From the sequence record PV764938.1: a DNA stretch of 64,000 bases; one strand, 5' to 3'. Made by a program: the position numbers and the translations under genes. Each line of letters opens with the position of its first letter. Positions within the stretch are counted from its first letter, which is position 1. The notes beneath the pieces were generated by a model. It was given only the letters and a program-made list of their open reading frames with translations, did no database searches and had not been told where the DNA came from. This document shows positions 1,872 to 46,631 of the stretch, piece by piece.

Positions 1872-1948
1872 GCGCGTATAGCTCAGTTGGTTAGAGCACT
1901 CCGCTGATAACGGAGAGGTCGAAAGTTCGAGTCTTTCTCCGCGCACCA
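1872..1948 (+). tRNA. tRNA-Ile(GAU)
   Basis: Cloverleaf; anticodon arm CTCCG-CTGATAA-CGGAG; GTTCGA T loop; encoded CCA. Confidence 0.95.
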
Positions 1949-2004
1949 TCTTCCTAAAATTCTAATTTATTGACGTTTGCAAACCAGAGTTGCTACTCTG
2001 GCTA

Positions 2005-2805
2005 ATGCTTAAAAATAATAACAATAATCAATACATTAGAGCATTTTCTCAAGCAGAAACACAACAGGCTCAAACGCTTCTCGAACAGTTGGTCCTTGCG
2101 AAACAAGGAGCCAAGATTGAAGAAGCTGACTGGTCTTCCCTGTATTGCGATGTGATTGGTGCCCCTCGACAAAAGCTCAGCAACCTTCCGTTTCGTGATT
2201 TCAACCACGATGGCGTGGGTGTAGAGTTCAAGTTCATGTCGCGTAAATCGCCGATCTCGGATGTGGGTAAATCAATCATGCACCCATCGGCAACTCGGAC
2301 AATCTCGTTCGATGAGAACGACACAGCAGAGAATGCCAAGAATATGGTTCTCTCACAGTGGGCAAAGCAGATTGAAGGATTTGCTGAACGAGTGTCTGCG
2401 GGTTCCTCTGACGGTAGTTATGATTTGCGCTGGGGTATTCTGTTGTGGGCTGCCGATCACAGTGAGTTCCTGTATTTTGAGGAACGTATCGAAGAGCCAG
2501 ATCCTTCACAATATGAAGGCAGATGGGTTCTATCGTCGAGTCGTGGTCAAACCAGCCGCAACCTTCATATCTTCGAGAAGGCTTCTGGTGAGAAGAAATT
2601 CTCCTGCACTTTGCCACGTAACGGAGCTAAACTTCAGCCGTATTTTCGTGTTCCGACTCTAGCTGAAGGGGCCATTCATTTTAAGGTTGCCCCTACGGAT
2701 TTGGTTCCCATCTACGTGAGTAAACCGATGAGCGAACGGCTTGTTCAGTTGTTTCCGAACCTCAACAGCAACGATGCAATTGATTTCTTGATAAATAGCA
2801 TGTAG
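2005..2805 (+). CDS. putative PD-(D/E)xK restriction-endonuclease-like nuclease
   Basis: 266 aa; E...D-FNHDGVGV-E-F-K spacing typical of PD-(D/E)xK catalytic motifs; own promoter at 1970-1999; no RBS; sits between two tRNAs. Confidence 0.45.
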   Translation: MLKNNNNNQYIRAFSQAETQQAQTLLEQLVLAKQGAKIEEADWSSLYCDVIGAPRQKLSNLPFRDFNHDGVGVEFKFMSRKSPISDVGKSIMHPSATRTISFDENDTAENAKNMVLSQWAKQIEGFAERVSAGSSDGSYDLRWGILLWAADHSEFLYFEERIEEPDPSQYEGRWVLSSSRGQTSRNLHIFEKASGEKKFSCTLPRNGAKLQPYFRVPTLAEGAIHFKVAPTDLVPIYVSKPMSERLVQLFPNLNSNDAIDFLINSM

Positions 2806-2820
2806 ACAAACTATGTGAAT

Positions 2821-2895
2821 GCTCCCGTAGTTTAATGGATAGATCGACTCTCTCCTAAAGAGTAGGTCCGGGTTCGATTCCCGGCTGGAGCACCA
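2821..2895 (+). tRNA. tRNA-Arg(CCU)
   Basis: Cloverleaf; ACTCT-CTCCTAA-AGAGT anticodon arm; encoded CCA. Confidence 0.93.
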
Positions 2896-3189
2896 ATGTT
2901 ACAACTCACCGATCTCCAAAAAGGTTTGATTGCTTACCACGTTGGTAAGCCGCTTCGTTACGATCATTCGATGCGAGTCCAGTGGCTTGCTAAGAATGGT
3001 ATGTACGGAAGCATCAGTGAGCTTCGTGAGAACCAAGCCCAACGCAATGATATTCTGGATTGGTGTTACCAAGAGTTCGGAAAAGTGTCCAAAGGTCGAT
3101 GGGGTTGGATCACACTGGGTGATTGGCTCTTCGATGTCGGTTTCAACAGCAAAGCCGACATGATGCTCTTTAAGCTCCGCTGGTCTTGA
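2896..3189 (+). CDS. FKL-motif family small protein
   Basis: Ends VGFNSKADMMLFKLRWS; ATG directly follows tRNA CCA. Confidence 0.75.
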   Translation: MLQLTDLQKGLIAYHVGKPLRYDHSMRVQWLAKNGMYGSISELRENQAQRNDILDWCYQEFGKVSKGRWGWITLGDWLFDVGFNSKADMMLFKLRWS

Positions 3190-3237
3190 CTCCTTGTCTG
3201 TTCCTGCTATACCAGGGCAAAATTAAGGAGAGGATCC

Positions 3238-3426
3238 ATGACACTGAAAACCACCTATTTGCTCATTGCATTTCTCGTCGTCGCCGGCTTTGCTGGTTTC
3301 GTAATGAAGCCCGCGGTTTCAACCGAAGTGAACACCCCATTTAAGGAAGTCAAACTGCTGAAGACTTCGCGTGTGGCTGTTCCGCCGATGTCCGATGAGA
3401 TGCGCAGCCGCCTGTTTGCGAACTAA
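3238..3426 (+). CDS. small membrane/secreted protein
   Basis: Hydrophobic N-terminus; AAGGAGAGG RBS; promoter at 3186. Confidence 0.7.
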   Translation: MTLKTTYLLIAFLVVAGFAGFVMKPAVSTEVNTPFKEVKLLKTSRVAVPPMSDEMRSRLFAN

Positions 3427-3701
3427 TGTCGTTCATCATTCCATCCGATGAGCTCGTTTGTATCGCCGTGTTCAAGAAGGTTCGCGGCGGTATCAACGAG
3501 ATCAAGGCATTCTACAACACTATCCTGTATCACAGTTTCACTTATACGAATCGTGTCGATCTGGAGCTTATTGCGCAGACTCACTTCTACTTTACGTACA
3601 ATCCGGAACGGCATTTTGTCATGGGATTCAGTGACATAAAGACGTTCATGGTGCTCAAACTTGCGTATCCAGAGCTTATTGTGGATGTTTGGTACAAATA
3701 A
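3426..3701 (+). CDS. FKL-motif family small protein (divergent)
   Basis: TAATG coupling; contains GFSDIKTFMVLKLAY. Confidence 0.65.
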   Translation: MSFIIPSDELVCIAVFKKVRGGINEIKAFYNTILYHSFTYTNRVDLELIAQTHFYFTYNPERHFVMGFSDIKTFMVLKLAYPELIVDVWYK

Positions 3702-3744
3702 GGTTGACTCCCAAGACAGACGTAAATAAAGTACAAATACATAT

Positions 3745-3820
3745 GGTGGTCGTAGTGTAGCGGTTAGCACACCAGACTGTGACTCTGTTAGGGCGGGTTC
3801 AAATCCCGTCGATCACCCCA
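3745..3820 (+). tRNA. tRNA-His(GUG) with encoded G-1 and C73
   Basis: 8-bp acceptor G-GTGGTCG / CGATCAC-C-CCA; anticodon loop CT-GTG-AC; GGTTCAAATCC T arm. Confidence 0.93.
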
Positions 3821-4043: not shown

Positions 4044-4686
4044 ATGCTACGCGGAACTCGTGTAATTTCTGGCAACGAAGCTAGAGCGTATACCAATGCA
4101 ATCGACACCCTCCGAGGTTGTCTTCATCGAAGCTGATTACGAAGAAGTAATTCTGCCGTCTATCTGGGAACAGCAGACGTTCATCGATAAAGCTGGCCCG
4201 GAAATCATCAATCAAATGTGGGCTTTTGCGGATAAGGGCGGACGCGATGTCTGCTTGATTCCCGAAGTCACTGGGCTCGTACAAGAGCTCTGGCGTAACG
4301 AATGGTCCAAGGCCAAGAAAGCACGCCGAATCTTTTATGTGAACCGTTGCTACCGATACGAACGGCCACAAGCTGGTCGTTACAGAGAGTTTACCCAGTT
4401 TGGTGTAGAACTCCTTGGTGGTGATTCGACTACAGATCGTCAAGAAGTAATCGATTTGCTCGACAATTGTTTGAAGCGTATTCCGAATCTCTCCTATGAG
4501 TTTTCGGATGGTGTAAAGCGCGGGCTGTCCTATTATACCGAAGATGGTTTTGAAGTAGAATGTTCGCAGCTTGGCGCGCAAAAGCAGATCGCTGGTGGCG
4601 GTCGTTACGCGGAGGGGATCGGTTGGGCGATCGGAGTGGATCGCCTGATTCTAGCAGCCGAATCAACTACGAGCACGAAGACATAA
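4044..4686 (+). CDS. hisS: minimal histidyl-tRNA synthetase (catalytic core only) with +1 frameshift near 4113-4120
   Basis: AAGGAGG RBS before ATG 4044; frame 1 gives MLRGTRV...DTLR, frame 2 continues VFIEADYEEVILP; motif 2 YRYERPQAGRYREFTQ, RGLSYY, GGGRY, motif 3 GWAIGVDRL; no C-terminal anticodon-binding domain. Confidence 0.85.
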
Positions 4687-6528: not shown

Positions 6529-6605
<77 letters not shown>

Positions 6606-15998: not shown

Positions 15999-16074
15999 GG
16001 GATGGTGTTCCGGAATGGCACGGAAGCGCCTGCAAAGCGTTCGAATGTGGGTTCGATCCCCATCCATCCCTCCA
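15999..16074 (+). tRNA. tRNA-Cys(GCA)
   Basis: GGGATGG/CCATCCC acceptor, U73, CCA; loop CT-GCA-AA. Confidence 0.88.
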
Positions 16075-16491: not shown

Positions 16492-17538
16492 ATGACACTT
16501 TTTGCGGACAAACTACTCTACAAGAAGAATTGGCATACGAGTTCATATGCGATGTATGCTTTCGACAGTTTTGCCCCAAAGCTGTATCAGTCCAGGGTGA
16601 TCTCACTAGATGATCACGCCGCAAAACTTGCCCATGATCTCTCCCTGAAATTAGACCTCTTGGAGATCCACAACAATCTCCGTTTCCTTCGATTGCCGAG
16701 TGAGCGCATTTGGATCGAAATGTCCCGTCGTGCGTTCTTCGAAAATCCAACCCTTGAAGAAGGGCGTGTGGGATACCTTCTCGAACGCACAAGCGAGACT
16801 GGCTTCCGTATCTCGATGATCGAGGAAATGATCACCGATTTCGATGATGCAATTCTCCCAGTCGTCGTGAGTTTCCAGTTTGATTCCGACTTTGAGAAGC
16901 TTAATCACTCAAATCCGATGAAGCTTTCCCATCAACAGAAGATGAGGTATTGCTTTGGCTTCGGATATAAGCCAGACGAAGATGGTCTTGATCTTGAAGT
17001 TCGTTGGCTCACCCAGCACGCAGATGTGCAGTTCCTATCGGACTTCTATGCGGAACAATATCGTACATTGGGAGCAGAGCGGGCATTCTTTGAGACACTG
17101 AATGAGGTCTCCGGGACCGTCCGTCATATCTTGGCGATGGTGCTGCTCATGCACTTCCCGCCAGTCTCCTTTTACGCGAGGAAGCCACAGGGCGGCCGTC
17201 GGATCATTAACGGTCAAAGCCGTCCCTATTTGCGTGTCGAGGATATGCAGGTAGCATGGCCCAAGCGTAAACCCGTAAACGTGTTGCGCTGGGTCAAGAA
17301 TGAGCTACCCAAGGAACCAGTCCACAAACGCGCACACGATGTGGACGGACATTGGCGTAGACTTCGCCCACTCACCGACGACGAGCTTGATGCACTGAAC
17401 AAGCCGCGTTCGCTGCTCGCACCCCACGAGTTCTACAAACACACTTGGGTCCGTGAGCACCAACGTGGTGATGCAAAGCTGGGCTTTGTTCACAAACGCA
17501 AGCATATTGTGGCAAATGAAAACTTGAATTCCATCTAG
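16492..17538 (+). CDS. hypothetical protein with His-rich C-terminal GHWR motif
   Basis: 348 aa; HKRAHDVDGHWR...WVREHQRGDAKLG; GGAGATC RBS. Confidence 0.75.
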   Translation: MTLFADKLLYKKNWHTSSYAMYAFDSFAPKLYQSRVISLDDHAAKLAHDLSLKLDLLEIHNNLRFLRLPSERIWIEMSRRAFFENPTLEEGRVGYLLERTSETGFRISMIEEMITDFDDAILPVVVSFQFDSDFEKLNHSNPMKLSHQQKMRYCFGFGYKPDEDGLDLEVRWLTQHADVQFLSDFYAEQYRTLGAERAFFETLNEVSGTVRHILAMVLLMHFPPVSFYARKPQGGRRIINGQSRPYLRVEDMQVAWPKRKPVNVLRWVKNELPKEPVHKRAHDVDGHWRRLRPLTDDELDALNKPRSLLAPHEFYKHTWVREHQRGDAKLGFVHKRKHIVANENLNSI

Positions 17539-17576: not shown

Positions 17577-17915
17577 ATGATATCCTACATTACTGAGTCC
17601 GAAATTCTTAAACTGCCTACGTATGTCTGTGCGCGAACAACTCGTCTCCAATACGAGAACGCCGTGATGATGTGGAACCTGATTCACGACGAGAAGATGG
17701 AAGTCTACGTCTATGATTCCATCTTGGATAAACGGCTGGCCAGTGCTAGGCGCTATGATAGCGAGCATCGACTAACCGTTCACAACTTGATTATTTCGGA
17801 TTATCTTGTATTCGTACATCAGTGGGAACTTATCAAGTGCCGACTCTGCGGAGATTATTCATTCGAGGTCGTGCGCAGCGACAAGGACTATAAACTGGAA
17901 GAGCAAAATGGCTGA
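17577..17915 (+). CDS. hypothetical protein
   Basis: 112 aa ORF in operon. Confidence 0.6.
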   Translation: MISYITESEILKLPTYVCARTTRLQYENAVMMWNLIHDEKMEVYVYDSILDKRLASARRYDSEHRLTVHNLIISDYLVFVHQWELIKCRLCGDYSFEVVRSDKDYKLEEQNG

Positions 17916-18324
17916 AGAAAAAGAAGAACTCAAAATGTGGCTTGTGGTTCGCGGTGATATCGTGATCCCAAAGGGAAAGCTTGCTGCTCAAGCCGGTCAC
18001 GGATTTTGCTCGGCAATGCGTGCGGCACTTGAAAACGATGCCTGGGGCAAAGCGACCGACGAGTCCGGTTACTACGAGGGTGTTGTCGATCGCTACTTCG
18101 AGCAGAACCAGCCCAAGATCACAGTCGTTGCAAAGAATCTCGCAGCCTTAGAGCGTGCCTACAAAGAATGTATGGACGAGATGCTGCCGTGTAGCTTTAT
18201 CATCGATGAGGGCCGTACGGTGTTTCCTGAGCCCACAGCGACTGTGGTTGGGATTGGTCCGTGCCTGCGTAGTGAGCTACCGAAGTTCGTACAGCGTTTT
18301 CAACTGATGAAAGACGACGAATGA
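17908..18324 (+). CDS. peptidyl-tRNA hydrolase, Pth2 type
   Basis: KGKLAAQAGHG, QPKITV, IIDEGRTVF, TVVGIGP signatures of PTH2. Confidence 0.9.
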   Translation: MAEEKEELKMWLVVRGDIVIPKGKLAAQAGHGFCSAMRAALENDAWGKATDESGYYEGVVDRYFEQNQPKITVVAKNLAALERAYKECMDEMLPCSFIIDEGRTVFPEPTATVVGIGPCLRSELPKFVQRFQLMKDDE

Positions 18325-19109
18325 CACTTTTCGTCCTCCAAAACAATCGTATGGAACGCCTGGTCTATCCCGTGCTGGACTATTGTCGTGAGCGTGGCTA
18401 CCAGTGGCTGGATCGGTCGATGACCGATGACTTTGATTTTGACGCCGTAAACTATGAAGAGTTCGGCGGTCATCATCAGCCTATGATTGTTTATGGTTCA
18501 GTCGGTTGGTGCAAGCTGGCGGCTAATTGTTTGGTCACGGGCATGTACGTTTGGAGCGGAACAAAGGTCTTTGATTCTTACTATTGGCAGCAAACGCTGG
18601 GTAATGGCTATTTGAATCATGATGGCACGCTAGTCCGCGCTGACTCCATCGAGGACCTTTTCAGTCACTATGCGTTCCACGACAAGTACCATCTTCGTCC
18701 CTCGAATGAGGACAAGGCTTTCCTTGGTGCAGTCTACGACAGAGAGTCGTGGCTCCGACATAAGGAAGAACGCAATGTTGTGGGCCATCTTCCCGTGATG
18801 ATGAGTCCGTTGAAGAAGATCAACGCGGAATATCGCAGTTGGTTCATCGACGGTAAAATCATAGAGATCAGTCAGTATCGGCTTAACGATGTGCATGATC
18901 GTCAACGTATCACGGATCCCAAGCTGTTTGCGGTTGCCGAGGGTATTGCTGAGCAACTACAGGTGGATCATCCCTATGTGTTGGATTTCGCTGACACCGA
19001 CGATGGTTTCAAACTGATCGAGACCAATCCGCTTCATGCTTCGGGTTGGTATGCCGCTAATGTCGGCAACGTGTTGGATGCTTGGATCGAATACGTGAAT
19101 AAAAAGTAA
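18321..19109 (+). CDS. ATP-grasp protein (DUF4343/R2K-like)
   Basis: LRPSNEDKAFLG, EYRSWFIDG, YVLDFAD...LIETN ATP-grasp motifs; paralog of 34859-35629. Confidence 0.75.
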   Translation: MTLFVLQNNRMERLVYPVLDYCRERGYQWLDRSMTDDFDFDAVNYEEFGGHHQPMIVYGSVGWCKLAANCLVTGMYVWSGTKVFDSYYWQQTLGNGYLNHDGTLVRADSIEDLFSHYAFHDKYHLRPSNEDKAFLGAVYDRESWLRHKEERNVVGHLPVMMSPLKKINAEYRSWFIDGKIIEISQYRLNDVHDRQRITDPKLFAVAEGIAEQLQVDHPYVLDFADTDDGFKLIETNPLHASGWYAANVGNVLDAWIEYVNKK

Positions 19110-19117: not shown

Positions 19118-19146
19118 TTGACTCCTCGGAGTCAACTCTATACAGT
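19118..19146 (+). promoter_or_regulatory. sigma70-type promoter of Y-like RNA 1
   Basis: TTGACT-N17-TACAGT, predicted start near 19153. Confidence 0.75.
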
Positions 19147-19152: not shown

Positions 19153-19291
19153 TGTGGGAGCCGATTTATTTGGGTTATCTCTTATTGGAAAAGACGGGGT
19201 CAGGTTCGAATCCTGAGGGCTCCACCATTCTATGGGGCTCTGGTGTAGCGGATAGCATCGAAAACAGTCCAGATATCCACTTGCTCTCACA
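19153..19291 (+). ncRNA. YrlA-type Y RNA 1 (Ro60-binding-like stem plus permuted tRNA-like domain)
   Basis: TGTGGGAGC/GCTCTCACA terminal stem; GCCGAT/CACTTGC bulged helix; TATTTGGGTT/AGTCCAGATA stem; order T arm, acceptor-like hairpin, D arm. Confidence 0.85.
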
Positions 19292-30894: not shown

Positions 30895-31842
30895 ATGAGA
30901 CGGAACACCTTTCACTATTACCGTGGTATCATCCACCCCTATAAGTCCAATACTGGAAACAACAGTGTCAAGCTTATCACTGCGGGTGGTTATTACAGTA
31001 GTGCGACCCAAATATCGGTAGACGGTATCAATTGGCAACCAACAACCACTGGAGCCAATGGCGCATATAATGCTGTGTATTGCGGCAAATACAAAACTTT
31101 CGTTGTTTGTGGTCCTGGATTCATTCGTGTCTATAATGCGGAGAATCTAGCAGCGGCACCAACCGTGGTAACACTTCCATCCGGTTATGCAAATGGTGCG
31201 TCCATTGCATACCATCCTCCCACGGGCAATGTGGCAATCGCTAATTTTGGTGGTGGCAACTCACACTATTCGACAAATGGTGGCTATACCTGGACCTCAA
31301 CCACTGCAATTGGTTCGTCAGATATGATGACCTACAACTACGACAATGGTGACCTAGTTCAAGTTACCCGAGACGGTAGCATGGGTCGTAGTTCAAACGG
31401 CGGGGTAAGTTGGGTCACTATGACTGGACCCGCTGCATCCACCCGCTTGGGAGTTGCTTATGCGTTTGGGAAATATTGGGTCACAAGTCTTGGCTCATCC
31501 AGCATTTATTGGACCAACAATAACGGAGCATCGTGGACACCAGTAGATGTAGGCAATGCAACCTCGCGTATTCACTTTGCTAAAGAAGCGAACATCCTGT
31601 TTGCTGCTTATGGTGCCGGTGTAACTTACACGAACAATGGTACTACTTGGCAAAATTCATCGTTGCCTCCGGGTTCTGCAGGTTCTAGAAGCCTTGGATA
31701 TTCCCCAACGGTCGGTCGCTTCTACGTGGGCACAACAGGCGAAGCCTATATGAGCAGTGACATGTTAACGTGGTCCGCGATGGCTGGCACCGCAAGTTTC
31801 GACCACTATGCGTTCGCGGTAGCTGATCCCCTTTTTGTTTGA
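30895..31842 (+). CDS. Asp-box/BNR beta-propeller protein, paralog of 21299-22261
   Basis: SVDGINW, STNGGYTW, SSNGGVSW, TNNGTTW repeats; TAAATA at 30864. Confidence 0.7.
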   Translation: MRRNTFHYYRGIIHPYKSNTGNNSVKLITAGGYYSSATQISVDGINWQPTTTGANGAYNAVYCGKYKTFVVCGPGFIRVYNAENLAAAPTVVTLPSGYANGASIAYHPPTGNVAIANFGGGNSHYSTNGGYTWTSTTAIGSSDMMTYNYDNGDLVQVTRDGSMGRSSNGGVSWVTMTGPAASTRLGVAYAFGKYWVTSLGSSSIYWTNNNGASWTPVDVGNATSRIHFAKEANILFAAYGAGVTYTNNGTTWQNSSLPPGSAGSRSLGYSPTVGRFYVGTTGEAYMSSDMLTWSAMAGTASFDHYAFAVADPLFV

Positions 31843-31883
31843 CGTATTCCGATTCTGTGTTAGAGTGCGACAAAGGAGATCCT

Positions 31884-32642
31884 ATGAGAATCAAGATTGT
31901 CGCATCGCCCGCACCACTGGCACGTGAAGCCCATGCTGAGGTTTGTGGCCGGTACAAATGTGTGGAAGACATCAAGGACGCTGACGTTCTCGTAGTGCTC
32001 GGCGGTGATGGTACAATGCTCCATGCAATCCACACCTATATGGAATACGGGCTGCCCATCTACGGGATGAACCGAGGCCACGTTGGCTTTCTCCTCAACG
32101 AATACGACCCCAATCATCTGGATGAGAAGCTTGAAGCTGCCGTCGATACGATCGTGCATCCGCTTCGCACTCGGATCCAAACGACTGGCGGCATTTGGGA
32201 TCCATTGGCGATCAACGATGTCTCGATCACTCGCCAGTCGGGCCAAGCTGCCAAGCTCAAGATCAGTGTTGCTGGACAGGTTCGCATTGAGGAACTCATC
32301 GGCGATGGTCTAATTGTTTCGACACCAGTCGGTTCCACCGCTTACAACCGATCGGCTGGCGGGCCAATCCTTCCGCTTGAAGCACCACTGCTCGCGGTTA
32401 CTCCGATTTGTGCGTTCCGTCCTCGGCATTGGAAGGGAGCAATCATCCCGGACAATCTGCAAGTGGACGTCGAAGTGCTTGAGCGAGAAAGTCGCGGCGT
32501 GATGGTTGCGGCGGACTCCTTTGAAGTCAAAGATGTTATAAGTGTATCGGTGGCTCCGGACCATTCCAAGAAGGTTCATATTTTGAGTGATCCGGGTCGC
32601 TCGTGGTCCGATAAACTTTTGAGCGAGCAATTCTATGGCTAA
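31884..32642 (+). CDS. nadK: NAD kinase
   Basis: VLGGDGTML, GHVGFL, AINDV, GDGLIVSTPVGSTAYNRSAGGPI. Confidence 0.95.
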   Translation: MRIKIVASPAPLAREAHAEVCGRYKCVEDIKDADVLVVLGGDGTMLHAIHTYMEYGLPIYGMNRGHVGFLLNEYDPNHLDEKLEAAVDTIVHPLRTRIQTTGGIWDPLAINDVSITRQSGQAAKLKISVAGQVRIEELIGDGLIVSTPVGSTAYNRSAGGPILPLEAPLLAVTPICAFRPRHWKGAIIPDNLQVDVEVLERESRGVMVAADSFEVKDVISVSVAPDHSKKVHILSDPGRSWSDKLLSEQFYG

Positions 32643-33003
32643 GCGCAAGAAGAAGCCCAGAGACATGACACCGCACCAGTTCCCCGCGGACGAAATGTGG
32701 TATATTAGCAAGAGCGTGTGGAAGCTCAAGGAATACCGAGAATCTCGTTGGGACACCACAACGAAGATCAAGGCTCGGCTGTTCTATCAGGACGACGACA
32801 TTCCGGAAACCGTGTGGTGCCTACCGGTACCCGGCGATCTCGATACGCTGTTCTCTTGGACTGAGCAACTCGTCGGGCAAACTCACAATGCGCGTGTCGG
32901 CGCAATCGATACGCACGATGAGGATATCGAGGACACCTATCACAGCTTCATATTCGAGGACAAGAACGACATGCTCTTGTTCAAACTCTCGGTAAAGCTG
33001 TAA
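32635..33003 (+). CDS. FKL-motif family protein
   Basis: LFSWTEQLVG...FIFEDKNDMLLFKLSVKL. Confidence 0.75.
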   Translation: MAKRKKKPRDMTPHQFPADEMWYISKSVWKLKEYRESRWDTTTKIKARLFYQDDDIPETVWCLPVPGDLDTLFSWTEQLVGQTHNARVGAIDTHDEDIEDTYHSFIFEDKNDMLLFKLSVKL

Positions 33004-33059
33004 TAACCCAATAAAAACAAACAGGTATAACTTTTTTTGAAAAAAGTTGAAAAAAGTTA

Positions 33060-33088
33060 TTGCAAAGTCCTGGTGCTTATCGTATAAC
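33060..33088 (+). promoter_or_regulatory. sigma70-type promoter of large ncRNA
   Basis: TTGCAA-N17-TATAAC. Confidence 0.7.
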
Positions 33089-33094
33089 AAGAAC

Positions 33095-34010
33095 ATGACG
33101 CAAACGGAAACGTTTGCAGCACAATTCGGAATGAAACACTTCCAAACAGTTTGGCCGCTTAGGGCCGTTAAAGGGGCAGCATCCGCGAGGGTGTTAAAGC
33201 AAGGTTTCCCAGAAACTTGCGCCATAGCAATATGGTTCCACTAAGCAAGCACGGGCCTTCCGCGCAGGAGGTATCGTCCAAAAGGCGGTGCTAAGCGGGA
33301 AGACAAGGAGTAAGTTTGCGTCCGAAAGACGCGCTCATCGAGGCCTTACGGTGTAGATGAGTAACCCGCAAGGTATACTGCTCATGCAAAACTTGTCGAC
33401 CGCCGATGGCTAACGTGTAGTTGATTAGTTCGATGCTTAGCGGCAAAGAGCGGTCAGCAATTTGATACGGAAACGGATTGCAACGTCCGAGTTCGTAGAA
33501 AATGATTGAGTACCTCGCAAGGGGAAAGATACGCGGCGTGTAGTATTTTGTTTGGCGAAAGTCAGATGAAGCTACAGAGACAGCACGTCGTAATGGGTTT
33601 GCGATAGCATAGTGGTTATGCAACGGCCTTCTAAGCCGTCGAACGTAGGTTCAAATCCTGCTCGACATAAAAACGCAAAGACTGTCTCGGTAGTGTGTGA
33701 AAGGTGCTTAATGCTCAGGGCGAAAGCTAACTGAGTCACTCAAAGGCCGCAAGCTGGAGAGTGTTTATAGAAGAAAGTTCATAATCGGGTAGCTCCGATG
33801 AGCGGCATGCGAGTGTCGGTGGGCCGGAAACTGTAGAATAGCATACTATGACGTGTCTAATGCCTGACACTAAAAACGGCAGCATTGGTTGATACGTGTT
33901 TAGGTGAAAGCCAAGCGCGTGGATGTTAGAGGGAACCCTCCGGGTAGCACTGGAACGGGATAATCCTCAAAGGCAACTACTGGAAGCTATAATCTCAGGC
34001 TTCCCGAAAA
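33095..34010 (+). ncRNA. large ornate ncRNA, GOLLD-like
   Basis: ~915 nt without a credible ORF between a promoter and a terminator; many GNRA-capped hairpins; embedded tRNA domain. Confidence 0.65.
33598..33669 (+). tRNA. tRNA-Arg(UCU)-like domain embedded in the large ncRNA
   Basis: D arm GCAT-AGTGGTT-ATGC; anticodon arm ACGGC-CTTCTAA-GCCGT; T arm GTAGG-TTCAAAT-CCTGC; acceptor only 3 bp, no CCA. Confidence 0.75.
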
Positions 34011-34011
34011 C

Positions 34012-34031
34012 AGCCCCGCAAGGGGCTTTTT
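34012..34031 (+). terminator. intrinsic terminator
   Basis: AGCCCC-GCAA-GGGGCTTTTT. Confidence 0.9.
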
Positions 34032-34049
34032 CCATATCAGGAATATCAA

Positions 34050-34310
34050 ATGTCTCAAGAAGTTAACCGATATTTCGTCAAAAGCGATCACTTTGCATTT
34101 ACGTGGTATGCCCGAGTTGACACCGACGATGGTCACGCCAATATCACTCCCAACCTTTACAGTGAATTCTACGCGGACATTCGCCGCTTCTGTAGCGAGC
34201 AATGGCCCGATGGTGAAGGCTGGGACTGGACTCTCGATCTCCGCGATGGCTCCATTTATATACCTGACCCCAAGCATTTCATGCTGCTGAAGCTGGCACT
34301 ATCTGCTTGA
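34050..34310 (+). CDS. FKL-motif family small protein
   Basis: IRRFCSEQW...IYIPDPKHFMLLKLALSA. Confidence 0.7.
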   Translation: MSQEVNRYFVKSDHFAFTWYARVDTDDGHANITPNLYSEFYADIRRFCSEQWPDGEGWDWTLDLRDGSIYIPDPKHFMLLKLALSA

Positions 34311-34352
34311 CTCTTTTGGTGTCCATGTTAAGTTCCAGTAAAGGAGATCACT

Positions 34353-34859
34353 ATGAGAGCCATTGCTAAAGTTTTGTCGGGCATTTTCGGCAATCCGTCC
34401 CCGCTTAAGGTGGTGGAACCAGTCGAAGCACCAAAGCCGACACCTCCGCGGGAAGTGACACTGGGCTCTCTGATCAATGCTAAGGAACGCGCCGAAAGGG
34501 CTGCTGAACAGGCTCGAATAGATGCCGAGCATGAAGCATACAAAAAGCGGATCGCCATCGAGCGCGTAGAAGTTGTCAGGTTCCTAGAAGCCGTAAAAGT
34601 TTCCTTCACCCATGATATCAAGCAGGGGCGGCGACCACATTCGGTGATGATTCCCGATACACCTGAATTCAACACAGCAAGTTGGCGGTTTGACAAGATG
34701 CTCCATCGTTTTGAAATGGACAAGCATCCGCATAAACGAGCTTTCGACAACTTCTTCATATGGGTCAAATCGCAACGTCTGTATGTGGGACTCTTCCGTC
34801 GCGAAGATGGTCGCTATTACATTAACAACTGGGCGGCACAGTCCGAGGATAAGTTTTAA
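34353..34859 (+). CDS. hypothetical protein
   Basis: AAGGAGATC RBS; promoter at 34307. Confidence 0.7.
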   Translation: MRAIAKVLSGIFGNPSPLKVVEPVEAPKPTPPREVTLGSLINAKERAERAAEQARIDAEHEAYKKRIAIERVEVVRFLEAVKVSFTHDIKQGRRPHSVMIPDTPEFNTASWRFDKMLHRFEMDKHPHKRAFDNFFIWVKSQRLYVGLFRREDGRYYINNWAAQSEDKF

Positions 34860-35629
34860 TGCAGTGGATTCTCCAGGACTACGAAGACACCAATAAGCTC
34901 GGAGAAATCCTTGAGCGTGTTGGGATTGCTCATAGTTTTCATAAGGTTATCCCGTTTATCGGCCAGCTCGATCCGGTCCCGCCAATCGATGATCCCAATA
35001 GCGTGATCATGTTCGGCTCCTATAGCTTGCGCCACTATGCGCGTGAGCACGGATTGAAACCCGGTGTGTTCGAGCTTCGTCCATTCATTCACGAACACAA
35101 CTGGCAGCCCCATCTGTTGAATGGTATCGACAGCAAGATCATTGCTGCTCGCAACTTGGGTTCGCTTGATCCTGAGCGTCTGTATTTCGTCCGTCCCGTC
35201 GAGGACAGCAAGGAAATTGCCGGTGCTGTTATGTCGGGCACTGAGCTTGAATACCTCATCAAGACCGTCAATAATTTGGATCCATCCGAATACATCAAGG
35301 GGTCGCTGACTCCGGAAACCCTGTTGATGATTTCCGAACCCGTGAACATCCAGAAGGAATGGCGCACGTGGGTGGTCAAGGATCGGGTAGTCACATATTC
35401 GCTCTACAAAATGGGTTCACGAGTCCTGTATCGTCCTGAAATCGACGATGACGCGCTCGAATTCACAAAACGTATGGTCGCATTGAATCCTGGCTACGCG
35501 GATGCGTATGTGTTGGACGTCTGTAAGTGCGACCTAGGCTTAAAAATTCTAGAAACCAATTGCTTGAACGCCGCAGGCTTTTATGCTGCGGACTTGTTCA
35601 AGCTCATCGAAGCATTTGAGGAACTCTAA
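34859..35629 (+). CDS. ATP-grasp protein (DUF4343/R2K-like)
   Basis: FVRPVEDSKEIAG, KEWRTWVVKD, YVLDVC...ILETNCLNAAGFY. Confidence 0.8.
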   Translation: MQWILQDYEDTNKLGEILERVGIAHSFHKVIPFIGQLDPVPPIDDPNSVIMFGSYSLRHYAREHGLKPGVFELRPFIHEHNWQPHLLNGIDSKIIAARNLGSLDPERLYFVRPVEDSKEIAGAVMSGTELEYLIKTVNNLDPSEYIKGSLTPETLLMISEPVNIQKEWRTWVVKDRVVTYSLYKMGSRVLYRPEIDDDALEFTKRMVALNPGYADAYVLDVCKCDLGLKILETNCLNAAGFYAADLFKLIEAFEEL

Positions 35630-36201
35630 TGTACCGCAGCACTGACACGCACGTCTACTTCCTGGGCGGATATTTCTCCCAATGGGCTCGCACTCCATTT
35701 ACGGGCTCTGTTCCGATTCTCAGGGCAACCTCAAGCGGAGCAATCCTGCGTCCGGCGGGTTCACTCCGTTTCAATTGCTGCGAGCAATTTATGATGGCCG
35801 GCAAGGCTATGGTCTTCAACGATCAGGACGCAATGCTGGCGATCATGGATGCTGAACATCCAGCGGAACAGAAAAAGCTCGGCCGCACGGTCAAGAATTT
35901 CGACCAGGCCATCTGGGAATCTGTTGCACGGGATATCGTCTATATCGGCAACTATTACAAATTCACCCAGCACACGGCGTCGAAGGAATTCCTCGATGAA
36001 TCCGAAAATCGCACAATCGTTGAAGGTGCAGATTACGATCCCGTTTGGGGCGTGAAAATCGATTGGGCTGATCCGGCCATCGAAGATGAAGCAAACTGGA
36101 AGGGCACCAACTGGCTCGGACAGTGCATCATGCGTGTTCGTGAAGACATTGGTGTGCATGGCACCAGCGCGGATCCGTGGAAGCTGCGGAGACCCTGGTA
36201 A
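35629..36201 (+). CDS. NADAR (YbiA-like) ADP-ribosyl glycohydrolase
   Basis: GYFSQW, CEQFMMAGKA, KKLGR, YKFTQH, VEGADYDPVWG, GTNWLGQCIMRVR. Confidence 0.9.
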   Translation: MYRSTDTHVYFLGGYFSQWARTPFTGSVPILRATSSGAILRPAGSLRFNCCEQFMMAGKAMVFNDQDAMLAIMDAEHPAEQKKLGRTVKNFDQAIWESVARDIVYIGNYYKFTQHTASKEFLDESENRTIVEGADYDPVWGVKIDWADPAIEDEANWKGTNWLGQCIMRVREDIGVHGTSADPWKLRRPW

Positions 36202-36701
36202 TGCACGGATTCCAAAAGCGTGCCGTCGATATGATGCGGCAGTGGGATTCCATTGCCAAATCTATCATTGCTTCACCGCGTCATAACTCGTTCATCGACA
36301 GAGCTATCTGGCCGAACATCAGCTTCAAAACCCGCTACAATTGGTGGTTCGGTTTCGATGCCTGTCATAGCATCGACCTCCGTTACAGTGAGGTTCAATA
36401 CCGAACTCATCGGCCCTATGCGATTGAAGTCGTAGGGGTGAATTCCGACAATACTGGTGTTCAGGTCCCCCACAACCATCCATTGATCAAACATTTGGAT
36501 AAATGGTGCTTCTCCCATTATGGGCGGCCCTATAAGAAGCCAGGTGCTCGTTGGAAACGTGGTCGCAACCATAACACCAACGCACACGGAACCTATTACT
36601 TCCGTAACCGTTCGGATGCCGCTGCATTCAAATTCCACTTTCATCAAGCAACGCTGGCAGGGAGTGGCAATATCCTCAACGGCGAAGCTCTGGAATATTG
36701 A
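36201..36701 (+). CDS. FKL-motif family protein (extended)
   Basis: LDKWCFSHYG...YYFRNRSDAAAFKFHF. Confidence 0.7.
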   Translation: MHGFQKRAVDMMRQWDSIAKSIIASPRHNSFIDRAIWPNISFKTRYNWWFGFDACHSIDLRYSEVQYRTHRPYAIEVVGVNSDNTGVQVPHNHPLIKHLDKWCFSHYGRPYKKPGARWKRGRNHNTNAHGTYYFRNRSDAAAFKFHFHQATLAGSGNILNGEALEY

Positions 36702-36732
36702 TAAAGTCGGTGTGCTCTGTTAGATTCTAATT

Positions 36733-37224
36733 ATGGCTCACGGACTTTATTACCACTCTGCTATTCAGCACGACACGATCATCGACTTCCGCGTTAACAT
36801 GGGAATGTCGAGTTCGCGTTATGCTCGATTCAAGAAAAACTACGAGTTTGTTTGGGATATCTACAACGATGTCGCAAAGAAGCACGGCATTAAACTCCCA
36901 CGTCATTGGGTAGCCGTCGATAAACTCAAAAAGGCTGACCGCTATCGTCGGTTCAAGGATGACTATTATATCCTGGAGCCTTTGGGCCCAGTAGTTCACG
37001 TTGACATGAACTTCAGTATGAACAACAATCTGAGTACATCAGCGAGCCGTGGTTCAGTTGCTTATGCGTTCAATTGGTACCAACTGGCCGAACAGTTCTT
37101 CATGGTTAATGGAACTGCGAAACAAGCTCTGTCCAAAGAGTACCGCGTGCGTCCTGGCTTCCTATGCGAGCGTTGGCGCGCAAAGTCGATGAGACAGGTT
37201 TATAATTTGACACGCAGGACCTAA
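36733..37224 (+). CDS. hypothetical protein
   Basis: 163 aa; promoter TTGATA-N17-TAGATT at 36698; apparently leaderless. Confidence 0.65.
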   Translation: MAHGLYYHSAIQHDTIIDFRVNMGMSSSRYARFKKNYEFVWDIYNDVAKKHGIKLPRHWVAVDKLKKADRYRRFKDDYYILEPLGPVVHVDMNFSMNNNLSTSASRGSVAYAFNWYQLAEQFFMVNGTAKQALSKEYRVRPGFLCERWRAKSMRQVYNLTRRT

Positions 37225-37256
37225 CCTGTTAATTGGGCGTTAAAGGAGCCCAATTA

Positions 37257-37949
37257 ATGTCTCAGAGCAAACAGATTTTCCTCCAGTCCCTCGGGCTGGC
37301 ACTAATCCTCACATCTTTCACATACCTGGTAAGTGTTTTGGTCGGCTGGACTCATCCGAGTCAGCTGAACTGGCTCGAATTTTTCGCAGTCTTCACAAGC
37401 TATTCCTGCACTTATATGTGTGTGCGCCAGTCGCGCTGGAACTATCCAATGGGCGTCCTGACAACGTTCATCTACAGCTGGTTCTATTGGACCGCTCAGC
37501 CTGAGCCGGCAACTGCACTGGCTATCTTCAATCTCTACCTGGTCTTTTCGTTGATGTTCGGCTACTGGCGCTGGGGCCCGGATGGTAACCCGCGTACGGT
37601 ATCACGTGTTGAATCCAAGTGGTGGGTCGGCTATGTGAGTCTCGGACTTGTGATCGCCGCTCTCATGTGGATCGCTTTGCAATTCGGTGCAAAGATCTCC
37701 AACTTGGAAATCGGAATCGTGATCCTTTCGGGTGTTGCCCAGTTCCTCTTAGACAACAAAAAGATTGAGACTTGGGCCGTTTGGATTGTAGTTAATATTC
37801 TAAGTATCTACTTCTACTGGACAGTCGGCTGGTACCTCGTTATGTTCCAATACGTGTTCTTCCTGGCCAATGCTTTCTGGGGCCGATACGAATGGCTGAA
37901 GTCGATGAAGGAAGCACCACAAGCATTCGGACGACAGGTAACAGCATAA
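37257..37949 (+). CDS. pnuC: nicotinamide riboside transporter
   Basis: Multi-pass membrane protein; QSRWNYPMG, GYWRW, AQFLLDNKKIETWAVWIVVN, GRYEW; upstream of nadR. Confidence 0.88.
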   Translation: MSQSKQIFLQSLGLALILTSFTYLVSVLVGWTHPSQLNWLEFFAVFTSYSCTYMCVRQSRWNYPMGVLTTFIYSWFYWTAQPEPATALAIFNLYLVFSLMFGYWRWGPDGNPRTVSRVESKWWVGYVSLGLVIAALMWIALQFGAKISNLEIGIVILSGVAQFLLDNKKIETWAVWIVVNILSIYFYWTVGWYLVMFQYVFFLANAFWGRYEWLKSMKEAPQAFGRQVTA

Positions 37950-38158
37950 TGGGATTGAAACGGCAATATCGCATCGAACGACACAGTCACAATCGTTGGT
38001 TCATTCAATGGTCGTGGATGGGTATGTTCTGGTCCTATCTGATGGACTCCCGCTATTACAACAGCAAGCACGAGTTTAGATCCGAACGCGAAGCCGAAGT
38101 CTTCATCAACGATATGATCAAGGCTCGCACCTCGGACATCAAGAAAGTCTACAAGTAA
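37949..38158 (+). CDS. hypothetical protein
   Basis: 69 aa; TAATG coupling. Confidence 0.6.
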   Translation: MGLKRQYRIERHSHNRWFIQWSWMGMFWSYLMDSRYYNSKHEFRSEREAEVFINDMIKARTSDIKKVYK

Positions 38159-38159
38159 A

Positions 38160-39212
38160 ATGCCAAGAGATATGAACGGTCTGATCATCATGACCGCCCT
38201 AGTGCCTACCATTGGCCACCGATTTCTCATCGAAACTGCCGCAGAGGTAATGGATCAGAATTTCGGACTATTGCATGTCATCGTGTTTGACCGTTCATTT
38301 GAGCCTATCAAAGGAAGCCTCAGAGCTTCTGCGATAAAAGAACAGTTCGCACACATGCCCTGGGTGCGCGTATACCATCACGTCGATGATGGGGCTCCAC
38401 AGAACGACGATGGTACCCAGGAGTTCTGGGACTATTGGTGTGAACTGGCCCGAGATATCACTGGAGAGGAAACTTTCCAATATGTGTTTGCGAGTGAGGC
38501 CTACGGCAACACCTACGCAAATCAACTCGGTGCAAAATTCATTCCCGTTGACATCGATCGCGAAGTCTACGCGGTCAAGGGCACCAACGTTCGCCGCAAT
38601 CTTAATTATGGTTTCGGCGATGTAATGCCGGCGTTCAAGAAGCACTTGGCTCGTCGCATCGTATTTTTCGGTGCTGAGTCCACCGGTAAGACCACACTCT
38701 CGAAAATGTTCGCCACCGACAACCGATATGGTGGAAAGTTCCTTCCGGAATGGGCGCGACCCTACTTGGAGCGTTTCGGTCCAGACGTGACTGATGAGCG
38801 GATGGAAAATATCACGCTTACTCAGTATGCGACACAGAAGTCGGTTATTGCTTCGCTGGATCGTCCCTGGATTTTCCAGGACACTGACCTGTTGAGCACC
38901 ATCGGTTACTATCGCATTTATGGTGGCAAGCATGATGGCCACATCGAAAACCTCTACAGGGAAACCAAGGGTCATCTCTACATCGTGATGAACTCGGGCA
39001 TCAAGTTTGCTCCTGATCCACTTCGTTATGGTGGCAATGTTCGTGAATCCACTGATCAGTTTTGGATTGATCTCCTTGAGGAATACGGCTGCAACTATTA
39101 CGTCGTGAAGGACAAAGGTTCAGCAATGTCTCAGTTCCATGAGATTGCTGAAGTGGTTGCGGATTTTCAAAGTTCCACATATAAGGAACTAGCTAATTTT
39201 GAGAGGGATTGA
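38160..39212 (+). CDS. nadR: NadR-like NMN adenylyltransferase / ribosylnicotinamide kinase (no HTH)
   Basis: PTIGH nucleotidyltransferase motif; FASEAYG; P-loop GAESTGKTTL; PEWARPY; DTDLLST. Confidence 0.9.
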   Translation: MPRDMNGLIIMTALVPTIGHRFLIETAAEVMDQNFGLLHVIVFDRSFEPIKGSLRASAIKEQFAHMPWVRVYHHVDDGAPQNDDGTQEFWDYWCELARDITGEETFQYVFASEAYGNTYANQLGAKFIPVDIDREVYAVKGTNVRRNLNYGFGDVMPAFKKHLARRIVFFGAESTGKTTLSKMFATDNRYGGKFLPEWARPYLERFGPDVTDERMENITLTQYATQKSVIASLDRPWIFQDTDLLSTIGYYRIYGGKHDGHIENLYRETKGHLYIVMNSGIKFAPDPLRYGGNVRESTDQFWIDLLEEYGCNYYVVKDKGSAMSQFHEIAEVVADFQSSTYKELANFERD

Positions 39213-44634: not shown

Positions 44635-44698
44635 CCAGGTTGACAAATTCCTGTTTCCCGCTTAGATAGTGGGAAACAGGAAGATATGGAGATCGAAG

Positions 44699-45055
44699 AT
44701 GAGTGTTGCAGATAACATCAAGAACGACAAATACAAAGTGAAGATCGAGTATCCGGTTCGTCCGTCGAAGCCGATCCTCAAGAAGAATGCAACGTCGGCA
44801 GAAGCGCGTGAATACGCTGATTTGCTCGCCGCATATGAATCCGCCGGCGACAACTTCAACGCTTCGCGCGAAGCGTTCCGCGCAGAAGAAAATCGCCTCT
44901 ACGCGCTTTTCCGTGAGGACGTTGAATCCGAATACGGAATGCGCGAACATCCGAAGCGCGAAAAGCTTTGGAGCAAGGCCTGGGAACGCGGTCACTCCGA
45001 AGGTCTTTCGCAGGTTCTCTGGTGGTACGACGATCTCTACGAGCTTGTCGCTTAA
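44699..45055 (+). CDS. hypothetical protein
   Basis: GGAGATC RBS; promoter at 44640. Confidence 0.75.
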   Translation: MSVADNIKNDKYKVKIEYPVRPSKPILKKNATSAEAREYADLLAAYESAGDNFNASREAFRAEENRLYALFREDVESEYGMREHPKREKLWSKAWERGHSEGLSQVLWWYDDLYELVA

Positions 45056-45073
45056 CACCAGGCATTGACAAGG

Positions 45074-45104
45074 ACCGCTCCGCGTTTTACGTAGGGGCGG
45101 TTTT
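45074..45104 (+). terminator. intrinsic terminator
   Basis: ACCGCTCC...GGGGCGGTTTT. Confidence 0.7.
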
Positions 45105-45222
45105 CTACGATTACTGCTTGACACAAGCTTTAATTGCAAAACGCTAATGTAAGGGTGTACGGAGCCGCAACGAATTGCGTACGGACACAGCACACTTAAA
45201 ACTTGTATGTGAGTATTCGCAC

Positions 45223-45705
45223 ATGGACCAGCACGATTTAGCAACGAAACAAGCACAAACCGAAAACTGGTTCCATGGCCGTGGCAAGCTTGTCTACGAC
45301 CCCGTTCGGCCCGGCTTGAAATCCAAGAACAAATGGTGGGTTGTCGTCGAGTTGGATCGCGGCATTACCGATTACTACCGTTGGTGGGTCAACAAGGAGA
45401 TCCTCAATCCTCTGGGGTTCGAACGCAAAGGTCTTCAAATGCCAGCGTGGGGCGCGCACATGAGCATTGTCCGTGGTGAACAGCCACGTCCTGACAAGCT
45501 GCATCTGTGGAACAAATACAACGGCGAGATCGTTGACTTCCGTTACCATTATGTGGTGCGTCAGTCCGGTGATACCACAGGCGGCGATCGCCCTGATGTG
45601 TTTTGGTTCGTGGATTCCATTTGCGCCAAGGGCAAAGCTCTGCGTGATGAGCTTGGTTTCCGTAGCAATTGGAAATTCCACATCACTGTTGGAAGAACCT
45701 ATTGA
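45223..45705 (+). CDS. 2H phosphoesterase
   Basis: Two HxS/T motifs: GAHMSIV and KFHITVG. Confidence 0.7.
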   Translation: MDQHDLATKQAQTENWFHGRGKLVYDPVRPGLKSKNKWWVVVELDRGITDYYRWWVNKEILNPLGFERKGLQMPAWGAHMSIVRGEQPRPDKLHLWNKYNGEIVDFRYHYVVRQSGDTTGGDRPDVFWFVDSICAKGKALRDELGFRSNWKFHITVGRTY

Positions 45706-45750
45706 CGTGGCTCCAGTGTGCTCGTATATTGGAGCCAAAGGAACAAAGAC

Positions 45751-46179
45751 ATGAAGACCAAACGTGGCACCTACTATTACATTCAAGTCGGTCCTAGCTT
45801 TTACGCTGGGACGCGCCCCGTTATGGTCGAAGTAAAACGGACCTCAGTGGATGCTGAACGGCTAAAGGAGAAGCGCAAGAATCTCCCTAAGTACCAGCTC
45901 AACAAAGTGGGTTCCGGCTATGGACGGTTTGTGATGCGCGGGGATGGTTCACGGCGTGTCAAGTCCTCAAAGGCAATGCACACGAGCATTCCGATGAAGG
46001 ACGAATACATTGAGGTACCGTCGAACCAATTTGTGAATGATTGGACTTCAGACGCCACGAAAGCGAAGAAGTTTAGGATTCACAGTAAAGCACTTGCAAA
46101 AGCCGACGAACTAGCTAACTCTCTCGGCTTGGACAAAGTAAAACCGAAAGTCATACTTTTTGAAGGAGATCGGACATGA
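45751..46179 (+). CDS. basic hypothetical protein
   Basis: AAGGA RBS; promoter at 45702. Confidence 0.7.
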   Translation: MKTKRGTYYYIQVGPSFYAGTRPVMVEVKRTSVDAERLKEKRKNLPKYQLNKVGSGYGRFVMRGDGSRRVKSSKAMHTSIPMKDEYIEVPSNQFVNDWTSDATKAKKFRIHSKALAKADELANSLGLDKVKPKVILFEGDRT

Positions 46180-46631
46180 TCGCAGAAGCACTGAAAAACA
46201 AAACTCTGGAACTCCGCAAGGCACGTGACCCGATGGCGACCTTCTTGATCGCTGTTGGCTCCAAGGCCAAGGATCTCGCGAAGGCTGAAAATCCGGCCGC
46301 AGAGACCTACAACGATGAACAGGCGCTTCGTGCCATCAACAGCTATGTCAAGGGCGCCGAAGACAACCTGGCTCTCCTGGCGGCTAATCCGGAATCTCCG
46401 ACCTACGTTCGTGCGGCTGCTGAGCGTGAAATGCTCAAGTCGTTCCTTCCGCAGGAAGCATCCGCTGACGAAGTCCGCAAGGAAGTCGAGCTGTTCGTCG
46501 AAAATGCCGAGGGCATGGTCGACCGCAAGAAGCTGATGGGCCCGATCATGAAGCACATCAACGACAAATTCGGTGCTGCCCTGAACAAAAAGGAAGCATC
46601 CGCAATCGTACAGTCGGTGCTGAACAGCTGA
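46176..46631 (+). CDS. GatB/YqeY domain protein
   Basis: DEQALRAINSYVK...AEREMLKSFLPQEASADEVRKEV...MGPIMK pattern. Confidence 0.8.
   Translation: MIAEALKNKTLELRKARDPMATFLIAVGSKAKDLAKAENPAAETYNDEQALRAINSYVKGAEDNLALLAANPESPTYVRAAAEREMLKSFLPQEASADEVRKEVELFVENAEGMVDRKKLMGPIMKHINDKFGAALNKKEASAIVQSVLNS

Follow-up and report, generated by a model that had tools for sequence, protein, structure and literature searches.

How should an interval of a jumbo-phage genome be read in which tRNA genes, tRNA-shaped RNAs and enzymes that handle tRNA recur among many other genes: as one arsenal raised against host defences, or as several devices for the upkeep of RNA and translation? The question arises at positions 1872-46631 of a stretch of 64,000 nucleotides (hereafter the window) which corresponds, at 100% identity, to positions 1-64000 of Sinorhizobium phage Phosso (PV764938.1), a soil isolate on S. 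meliloti with a circular genome of 469,473 bp. A first-pass annotation had listed seven tRNAs, an aberrant tRNA-like RNA, three Y-like RNAs, a large RNA displaying an Arg anticodon arm and a set of RNA-handling proteins, and had combined them into a single arsenal of replacement tRNAs, independent charging and tRNA-shaped decoys. We find these observations largely confirmed and the single-arsenal interpretation partly supported: each element is of a kind already known from jumbo phages, they occur independently of one another, and they probably belong to separate RNA and translation upkeep modules, not to one co-evolved arsenal. The interval itself is the final part of Phosso's large accessory arm, a tRNA island that runs, mostly on the plus strand, from ~383 kb through the genome origin to ~48 kb; its place as the tail of a tRNA-rich arm wrapping the origin follows from the distribution of ARAGORN tRNAs, 51 of 62 lying in the last 50 kb of the genome and six in the window.

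The strongest result of the analysis is the identification of three Y RNAs, all on the plus strand: Y1 (19155-19289), Y2 (24188-24321) and Y3 (24425-24560). They are predicted to be paralogous YrlA-class RNAs, each an independent gene, and all are unannotated in GenBank. Exact T-loop motifs outside tRNAs, a motif that occurs 23 times in the window against 9.2 expected, led to the region's two largest intergenic gaps, where Rfam had reported nothing; whole-window Rfam scans at the gathering score and at E<=1 returned no Y RNA match. All three RNAs present the same succession of modules: a 7-bp terminal helix P1 (strands, in the order of the three, GUGGGAGC/GCUCUCAC, UGCAGGC/GCCUGCA and UGUGAGC/GCUCACA), the bases C-GA-U, an imperfect second helix P2, GUUAUC, a T arm (GGUUCGAAUCC), a closed acceptor-like stem, a D arm, and CACUUG ahead of the closing strand. 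This is the module order of YrlA (Chen et al., 2014, PMC4201824). In Y1, P1 pairs 19155-19161 with 19283-19289 and is followed by the CGAU motif, with the T arm at 19200-19216 and the D arm at 19243-19258; in Y2, P1 pairs 24188-24194 with 24315-24321, the T arm is at 24231-24247 and the D arm, which is like that of tRNA-Glu, at 24273-24288. The position that an anticodon arm would take is occupied in all three by the P2/P1 helix, and there is no anticodon loop.

Comparative evidence bears out this structure. Searching IMG/VR with a pattern of these features recovered 40 phage loci, many on contigs of 400-500 kb, and RNAalifold applied to a 24-sequence alignment returned a structure of four helices in which 18 of 23 pairs show compensatory changes. 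A covariance model (R1), built from an alignment of the pattern-found phage sequences, scores Y1, Y2 and Y3 at 97, 110 and 90 bits (E-values of 1e-20 to 1e-25). In 83 distinct sequences the paired fraction of cells is 97.2%, where shuffling gives 65.7% and sliding no more than 46%, and 22 of 23 pairs covary, among them all seven of the 7-bp P1 helix; the T arm (99.8% of cells paired), acceptor-like stem (96.8%) and D stem (95.4%) likewise show compensatory changes. The Y-like RNAs with tRNA elbows of the first-pass annotation are thus upheld at these three positions by model score and covariation alike. Several uncultured phages carry tandem arrays of three to five copies (IMG/VR contigs L021, L022, L029 and L040). 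Two short candidates also lie between tRNA genes of the main Phosso array, at genome positions 420437-420499 and 420665-420734; neither was in the training set of R1, which gives them 32-33 bits, and they comprise P1, C-GA, P2 and an GUUAUCUU loop and lack the tRNA-like domain. Megablast and blastn found no close cultured relative and no Y RNA homologue among GenBank phages.

The expected protein partner is present in the same genome: a Phosso Ro60 is encoded at genome 290301-291965 (TROVE E 1e-47, vWA_Ro60 E 5e-47). In most of 43 phage loci retrieved via this Ro60 protein, R1 matches of up to 74 bits lie just upstream of Ro60 and in the same orientation, and since Ro60 was not consulted when R1 was built, these adjacent matches are independent evidence that this Y RNA family is the partner of Ro60. 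Five IMG/VR contigs hold both Ro60 and a Y RNA pattern match. A Thermus phage, phiLo, offers a precedent in which the phage Ro60 binds both phage Y RNAs (Yrl1/Yrl2) and host PNPase (PMC12135203). The Phosso Y RNA genes are scattered in the tRNA island far from Ro60, and searches confined to Ro60 neighbourhoods would therefore miss members of the family. Nearer to Ro60, 1.5 kb upstream of it, is a weak Y RNA-like candidate (genome 288695-288801, 20.7 bits, GAAGCCGAC...GGGUUAUC) which overlaps the start of an annotated open reading frame (ORF) of 81 residues. A 546-residue ORF upstream of Y2 and Y3 was suspected of being a Ro60 and proved to be an SF2 helicase.

Signals for separate transcription accompany each copy. 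A sigma-70-like promoter (TTGACT-17-TACAGT; 19118-19146, plus strand) ends 9 nt before Y1, and a TTGACT box stands 34-37 nt before the helix start in every copy (at 24153 for Y2 and 24391 for Y3); a terminator hairpin follows each Phosso copy, that of Y2 at 24359-24386. In soil relatives Y2 and Y3 are conserved, and other sequence has taken the place of the spacers between them. Contigs of a soil metatranscriptome cover the Y RNA and tRNA(CAU) loci, with none over 20.8-24.2 kb, which is suggestive of Y RNA expression.

Taken together, these data leave it exceedingly improbable that the Y-like elements are functionless remnants of decayed tandem tRNAs, made of the T arm of one tRNA and the D arm of the next. 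Tandem tRNAs do match R1 weakly (13-31 bits), an encoded NCCA followed by a 5′ acceptor strand does resemble a tRNA-tRNA junction, and the D arm of Y2 resembles that of tRNA-Glu. However, the true copies score 90-110 bits where tandem tRNAs reach 31 at most, the outer helix covaries in each of its pairs, the family adjoins Ro60 in other phages, every copy has its promoter and terminator, and sequences are kept in soil relatives in which the spacers are not, so that this origin is already contradicted.

The acceptor-like stem of the Y RNAs carries a further signal. In Y1 the T arm is followed by GCUCCACCA, a short spacer and GGGGCU, giving G1-C72, G2-C71, G3.U70, A73 and CCA in permuted order (19217-19223 paired with 19234-19240, with G4-C69 as the fourth pair; A73-CCA at 19224-19227). 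The combination of G1-C72, G2-C71, G3.U70 and A73 is the tRNA-Ala/tmRNA signature under the identity rules of AlaRS. That Y1 carries it accounts for its weak match to the Rfam permuted-tmRNA model, which at 19.5 bits is far under the threshold of 47. Y2 pairs 24248-24254 with 24264-24270 and has ACCA at 24255-24258; Y3 has an acceptor-like stem of 9 bp and lacks CCA; and NCCA is encoded in 13 of 91 R1 matches. G3.U70 occurs in 18 of the 83 distinct Y RNAs, the same wobble orientation being found three to seven times at other stem positions, and the full set with A73 occurs in 13 of the 83 (Y1 and 12 others, from several phage lineages) while pairs 4-7 covary; some of these 13, including Y1, encode CCA as well. 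It is conceivable, though in our judgement improbable, that a Y RNA subfamily including Y1 consists of alanine-type tRNA mimics, in which a cut by RNase P in the stem loop would yield a Ro60-bound RNA in two pieces whose tmRNA-like end could be charged by AlaRS. If so, a charged Y RNA would connect the Ro60 particle with EF-Tu, the ribosome or factors that sense aminoacyl ends, and the signature at least supplies a concrete hypothesis for the role of the Y RNA tRNA-like module. Chen et al. (2014, PMC4201824) make no mention of alanine or of U70, and we found no pairing of YrlA with AlaRS in the literature searched.

A second structured RNA lies in the 1-kb gap at 33-34 kb. The large RNA with an Arg anticodon arm seen in the first pass is GOLLD (Weinberg et al., 2009): its conserved part, at 33533-34001 on the plus strand, matches Rfam RF02032 at full length and above the gathering score (186.6 bits against 150, E 6e-51, model positions 1-416). 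The structured sequence upstream of it (33004-33532, fold z-score -5.0) may be the GOLLD variable 5′ region, and a terminator follows directly at 34012-34027. Within the linker is a tRNA-like domain (33598-33669, plus strand) that Rfam scores as tRNA at 54 bits with mispairs marked and that ARAGORN does not call; its anticodon loop reads CU-UCU-AA, and four of seven acceptor pairs are standard. Linker tRNAs of GOLLD have been described, together with a 14-mer nanocage seen by cryo-electron microscopy of another GOLLD member (bioRxiv 10.1101/2024.12.08.627333). The anticodon UCU occurs in the Phosso genome in this linker only, and the domain might be the phage's sole decoder of AGA. With the three Y RNAs, GOLLD makes up the contents of the region's two largest intergenic gaps and of this 1-kb gap, at all of which the GenBank record is empty. 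GOLLD sits inside an NAD-related cluster (31839-39212) of NAD kinase, an R2K ATP-grasp gene abutting NADAR, PnuC and a NadR-type NMN adenylyltransferase, and further NAD salvage genes are found at genome 268-275 kb. In phages DSS3_MAL1 (L096:1296-1584) and Magneto (L095:13-217), permuted (two-piece) tmRNA genes lie right beside GOLLD.

The tRNA genes of the window number seven, as first annotated: six canonical tRNAs called by ARAGORN and matched by Rfam, and an atypical tRNA(CAU) found by Rfam. All are on the plus strand and all encode CCA. The six are tRNA-Ile (GAU; 1872-1948, Rfam 69 bits), tRNA-Arg (CCU; 2821-2895), tRNA-His (GUG; 3746-3820, with a genomic G-1 at 3745 and C73-CCA), tRNA-Pro (UGG; 6529-6605), tRNA-Cys (GCA; 15999-16074, a low Rfam score of 32 bits) and tRNA-Gly (UCC; 26209-26283). 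The tRNA(CAU), at 20219-20293, is tRNA-Met in GenBank, scores 38 bits in Rfam (20220-20289) and is not called by ARAGORN; its acceptor stem is bulged and it lacks U8. No separate aberrant tRNA-like RNA could be placed: near 15.8-16.2 kb and 20.15-22.45 kb only tRNA-Cys and tRNA(CAU) were found, and beyond these, tRNA-like signal comes only from the linker of GOLLD and the domains of the Y RNAs. Elsewhere in the genome are two tRNAs with CUA, of amber-suppressor type (446731-446806 and 171983-172058).

These tRNAs invite the reading that they plainly supplement translation, adding capacity and matching the codons of a phage of 50% GC in a GC-rich host, with the rest being unrelated housekeeping and no link to defence. 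The GC content of the window (0.46-0.54), the presence among its tRNAs of some that read A-ending or rare codons (Arg CCU, Pro UGG, Gly UCC), and the phage's own PDF together with IF1, IF3, RRF and S21, these four encoded outside the window, all suit such a view. Yet the phage's own genes seldom use AGA and AGG (2.6 and 2.3 per 1000 codons), no tRNA-Tyr is found among the 62 ARAGORN tRNAs though Tyr codons are common (~32 per 1000), and Ro60, the Y RNAs, the RNA ligases and the 2H enzyme are left unexplained; supplementation alone is unlikely to be the full account.

A 196-residue protein (4096-4686, plus strand; Pfam tRNA-synt_His, E 2e-21), first annotated as a mini-HisRS, has the catalytic core of that enzyme. 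It aligns with T. thermophilus HisRS (4rdx) in two stretches, residues 38-156 and 243-319, and retains motif 2, the HisA/B elements, the GGGRY histidine loop and motif 3 (RYERPQAGRYREF, GGGRY and GIGWAIGVDR align to the T. thermophilus enzyme); the insertion domain and the anticodon-binding domain (HisRS residues ~157-242 and beyond 320) are absent, and under NCBIfam hisS (TIGR00442) it scores 142.5 bits, below the cut-off of 286.75. The idea that it is the front half of a frameshifted gene was rejected: neither a HisRS nor an anticodon-binding-domain signal is present in the three ORFs that follow. Charging of tRNA-His by this enzyme is plausible from its sequence, because motif 2, GGGRY and motif 3 are kept and a tRNA-His with G-1 and C73 lies 276 nt upstream; the proposal of independent charging stands to this extent, and the full HisRS architecture is missing. 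Short genes like it occur in two uncultured phages of 630-640 kb.

A Pth2-type peptidyl-tRNA hydrolase (17908-18324, plus strand), also proposed initially, is matched over its full domain by Pfam PTH2 (PF01981, E 1e-23, 84.1 bits against 23, covering all 115 positions of the profile), and at 71 bits is under the equivalog cut-off of NCBIfam Pth2. Its stop overlaps the start of the first of the two ATP-grasp genes, both of which belong to the R2K clade and score 53-66 bits with R2K_2 and R2K_3 against a cut-off of 26: number 1 (18321-19109, plus strand; R2K_3 E 5e-18, R2K_2 E 2e-14), coupled to Pth2, and number 2 (34859-35629, plus strand; R2K_3 E 6e-18), which is translationally coupled to NADAR (35629-36201, Pfam NADAR E 8e-42) in the NAD cluster and not to a tRNA enzyme. 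A third paralog in the genome (L006:19672-20529) comes directly after Rnl1, and the placing of R2K paralogs beside different enzyme genes (Pth2, NADAR and Rnl1) suggests paired activities.

Near the end of the interval, a 2H phosphoesterase (45223-45705, plus strand) is annotated as 'RNA ligase' and falls in an unnamed family, PHROG 12204; both H-x-T/S motifs are present (AHMSIV and FHITVG), with a Pfam 2H-SAK score just under the cut-off (24.7 bits against 27). It is followed by a 142-residue ORF (45751-46179, plus strand), for which Pfam, PHROG and ESM Atlas gave no match, and by a YqeY/GatB-tail domain protein (46176-46631, plus strand) that is above its Pfam cut-off (E 9e-11, 42.5 bits against 27); the first-pass assignments of a 2H phosphoesterase and of YqeY both hold. 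The 2H and YqeY genes are ~400 bp apart in Agrobacterium phage Atu_ph07 too (453183-454443). The Srd-like protein (28864-29493, plus strand) is borne out in part: its N-terminal ~85 residues resemble residues 14-96 of T4 Srd (phmmer E 5.5e-13, 37% identity), and the remainder of the 248-residue Srd is unmatched.

Do these parts act as one? A single counter-defence would have spare tRNAs replace those cleaved, tRNA-shaped RNAs soak up nucleases and Srd redirect host RNA decay. Phosso encodes much that such a scheme would use: 62-63 tRNAs in all (~56 of them outside the window), a heal-and-seal kit comprising Rnl1, an Rnl2-like ligase, the 2H enzyme, a CCA-adding enzyme and an annotated polynucleotide kinase (which has no Pfam match), an intact Arg anticodon arm in the GOLLD linker, and also, outside the window, ThrRS, CysRS and three more annotated peptidyl-tRNA hydrolase genes. 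Jumbo-phage tRNAs and repair enzymes have been so read in published reviews (PMC7824862). Nevertheless, the elements are dispersed among ~100 unrelated genes and do not travel together. By tblastn against 50,697 phage records, Ro60 is found in 354 (mostly actinophages), mini-HisRS in 20, R2K in 54, the 2H enzyme in 76, the Srd N-domain in 925 (matching the srd genes of T4-like phages), and YqeY in Phosso and Atu_ph07 only. The first-pass annotation had itself named independent variation across genomes as the first half of the case against its idea, and such variation is what we find; because these distributions differ so strongly among phages, the idea of a single arsenal holds poorly.

The decoy component is weakened further. 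The anticodon arm of the Y RNAs is replaced by the predicted Ro60-binding helix, and with no anticodon loop and a dedicated protein partner of their own they would make poor bait for anticodon nucleases; the only displayed anticodon arm is that of the GOLLD linker. In addition, the second R2K enzyme is paired with NADAR, the similarity to Srd is N-terminal only, and no tRNA-targeting defence was linked to the host in this analysis. An integrated counter-defence is accordingly distinctly unlikely. What survives of the original interpretation is an inventory that is right in nearly every item and a phage clearly invested in the upkeep of tRNA and translation, without the single co-evolved decoy arsenal. 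The broad 'arsenal' idea is in any case not new, as its general framework was set out by Iyer et al. (2021, PMC7824862), with many tRNAs, Rnl1/Rnl2, 2H phosphoesterases, PTH2, IF3, R2K ligases, TROVE with a tRNA-like partner, and NAD salvage with NADAR.

We consider it probable that the interval instead holds several separate upkeep modules: a tRNA supply, a Ro60-Y RNA particle, GOLLD, and enzymes that work on the ends of tRNAs or on stalled complexes. The seven tRNAs of the window would contribute to the genome-wide supply. From the paired Y RNA ends with their CGAU bulge motif we infer a Ro60-binding helix, with the middle of the RNA predicted to fold as a tRNA elbow, and by analogy with bacterial and Thermus-phage systems Phosso Ro60 would bind that helix. 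The tRNA-like module may then engage an exoribonuclease, for example host PNPase, or enzymes of tRNA processing, and the bound particle could redirect or dampen the decay or repair of RNA during infection. In Y1 and Y2 the acceptor-like stem has 7 bp and is followed by an encoded NCCA, an arrangement that suggests cleavage by RNase P into two-piece, CCA-ended molecules, as has been shown for M. smegmatis YrlA. GOLLD with its linker Arg(UCU) domain would form a module of its own, and the mini-HisRS beside tRNA-His, Pth2 with its R2K ligase and the 2H-ORF-YqeY cluster would act on tRNA ends or stalled complexes.

Several points weigh against this account. The gathering score of Rfam YrlA (RF02553, 69 bits) is not reached, Y3 scoring 17.1 bits and Y1 and Y2 giving no YrlA match at E up to 10, and the Ro60 motif GCCGAU of Y1-Y3 is one base off the published GNCGAA(N0-1)G. 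P2 is imperfect, and its per-sequence pairing did not beat shuffles; only its register is consistent, being offset by 4-6 nt in 18 of the 24 sequences. Y1-Y3 lie 266-271 kb from the Phosso Ro60, away from the usual adjacency. The metatranscriptome contigs could include DNA.

Around these modules, the plus strand carries all genes from position 1 to ~48.3 kb, where the accessory arm gives way to two giant minus-strand ORFs annotated as hypothetical, at 48338-57826 (3162 residues) and from 57900 past 64000 to genome 68978 (~3692 residues). Upstream of Pth2 lies a 348-residue ORF (16492-17538) for which neither Pfam nor PHROG gave a match; in its language-model features it is similar to AcrVA2-like (anti-CRISPR) clusters (0.97, 225 features in common), which we take as a lead only. 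Long unannotated stretches at genome 446806-448103, 229758-230773 and 288243-288753 may hold more non-coding RNAs.

How do these modules compare with known systems? As a cultured phage of a tractable host, Phosso is one in which the function of both the Ro60-Y RNA particle and GOLLD during infection is testable. Its Y RNAs share with YrlA-class RNAs, including those of phiLo (PMC4201824; PMC12135203), the CGA-type terminal helix, variable region, T arm, acceptor-like stem and D arm, with the acceptor-like stem of 7 bp as in M. smegmatis YrlA, and as in other YrlA/Ro60 systems a Ro60 with TROVE and vWA domains is encoded in the same genome beside several Y RNAs. They differ in lying within a tRNA island, 266-271 kb from Ro60 and under their own promoters, in the motif GCCGAU and scores far below the Rfam YrlA threshold, and in an NCCA that is encoded in the genome and not added afterwards; moreover, both strands of the lower helix are recognizable in Phosso (3′ CACUUG), unlike in YrlA and as in animal and Deinococcus Y RNAs. 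Y1 resembles tRNA-Ala and the two-piece (permuted) tmRNA of alphaproteobacteria in its acceptor signature in permuted order, whereas it has neither the mRNA-like reading frame nor the pseudoknots of permuted tmRNA and has instead a true D arm and a predicted Ro60-binding helix. Phosso GOLLD, like known members, is of phage origin, adjoins tRNAs and contains a linker tRNA, as do those of Caulobacter phage Magneto (169 bits) and phage DSS3_MAL1 (160 bits); the Phosso and Magneto linkers are clearly homologous and differ in anticodon, UCU (Arg) against CUU (Lys), and the acceptor stem of the Phosso linker is, unlike in known GOLLD RNAs, largely mispaired. Lastly, the repertoire described by Iyer et al. 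(2021, PMC7824862) consists of the same kinds of counter-measure items as that of Phosso; decoys were not proposed in that paper, and in Phosso the RNA partners are now mapped and the mini-HisRS and the 2H-ORF-YqeY cluster are added to the list.

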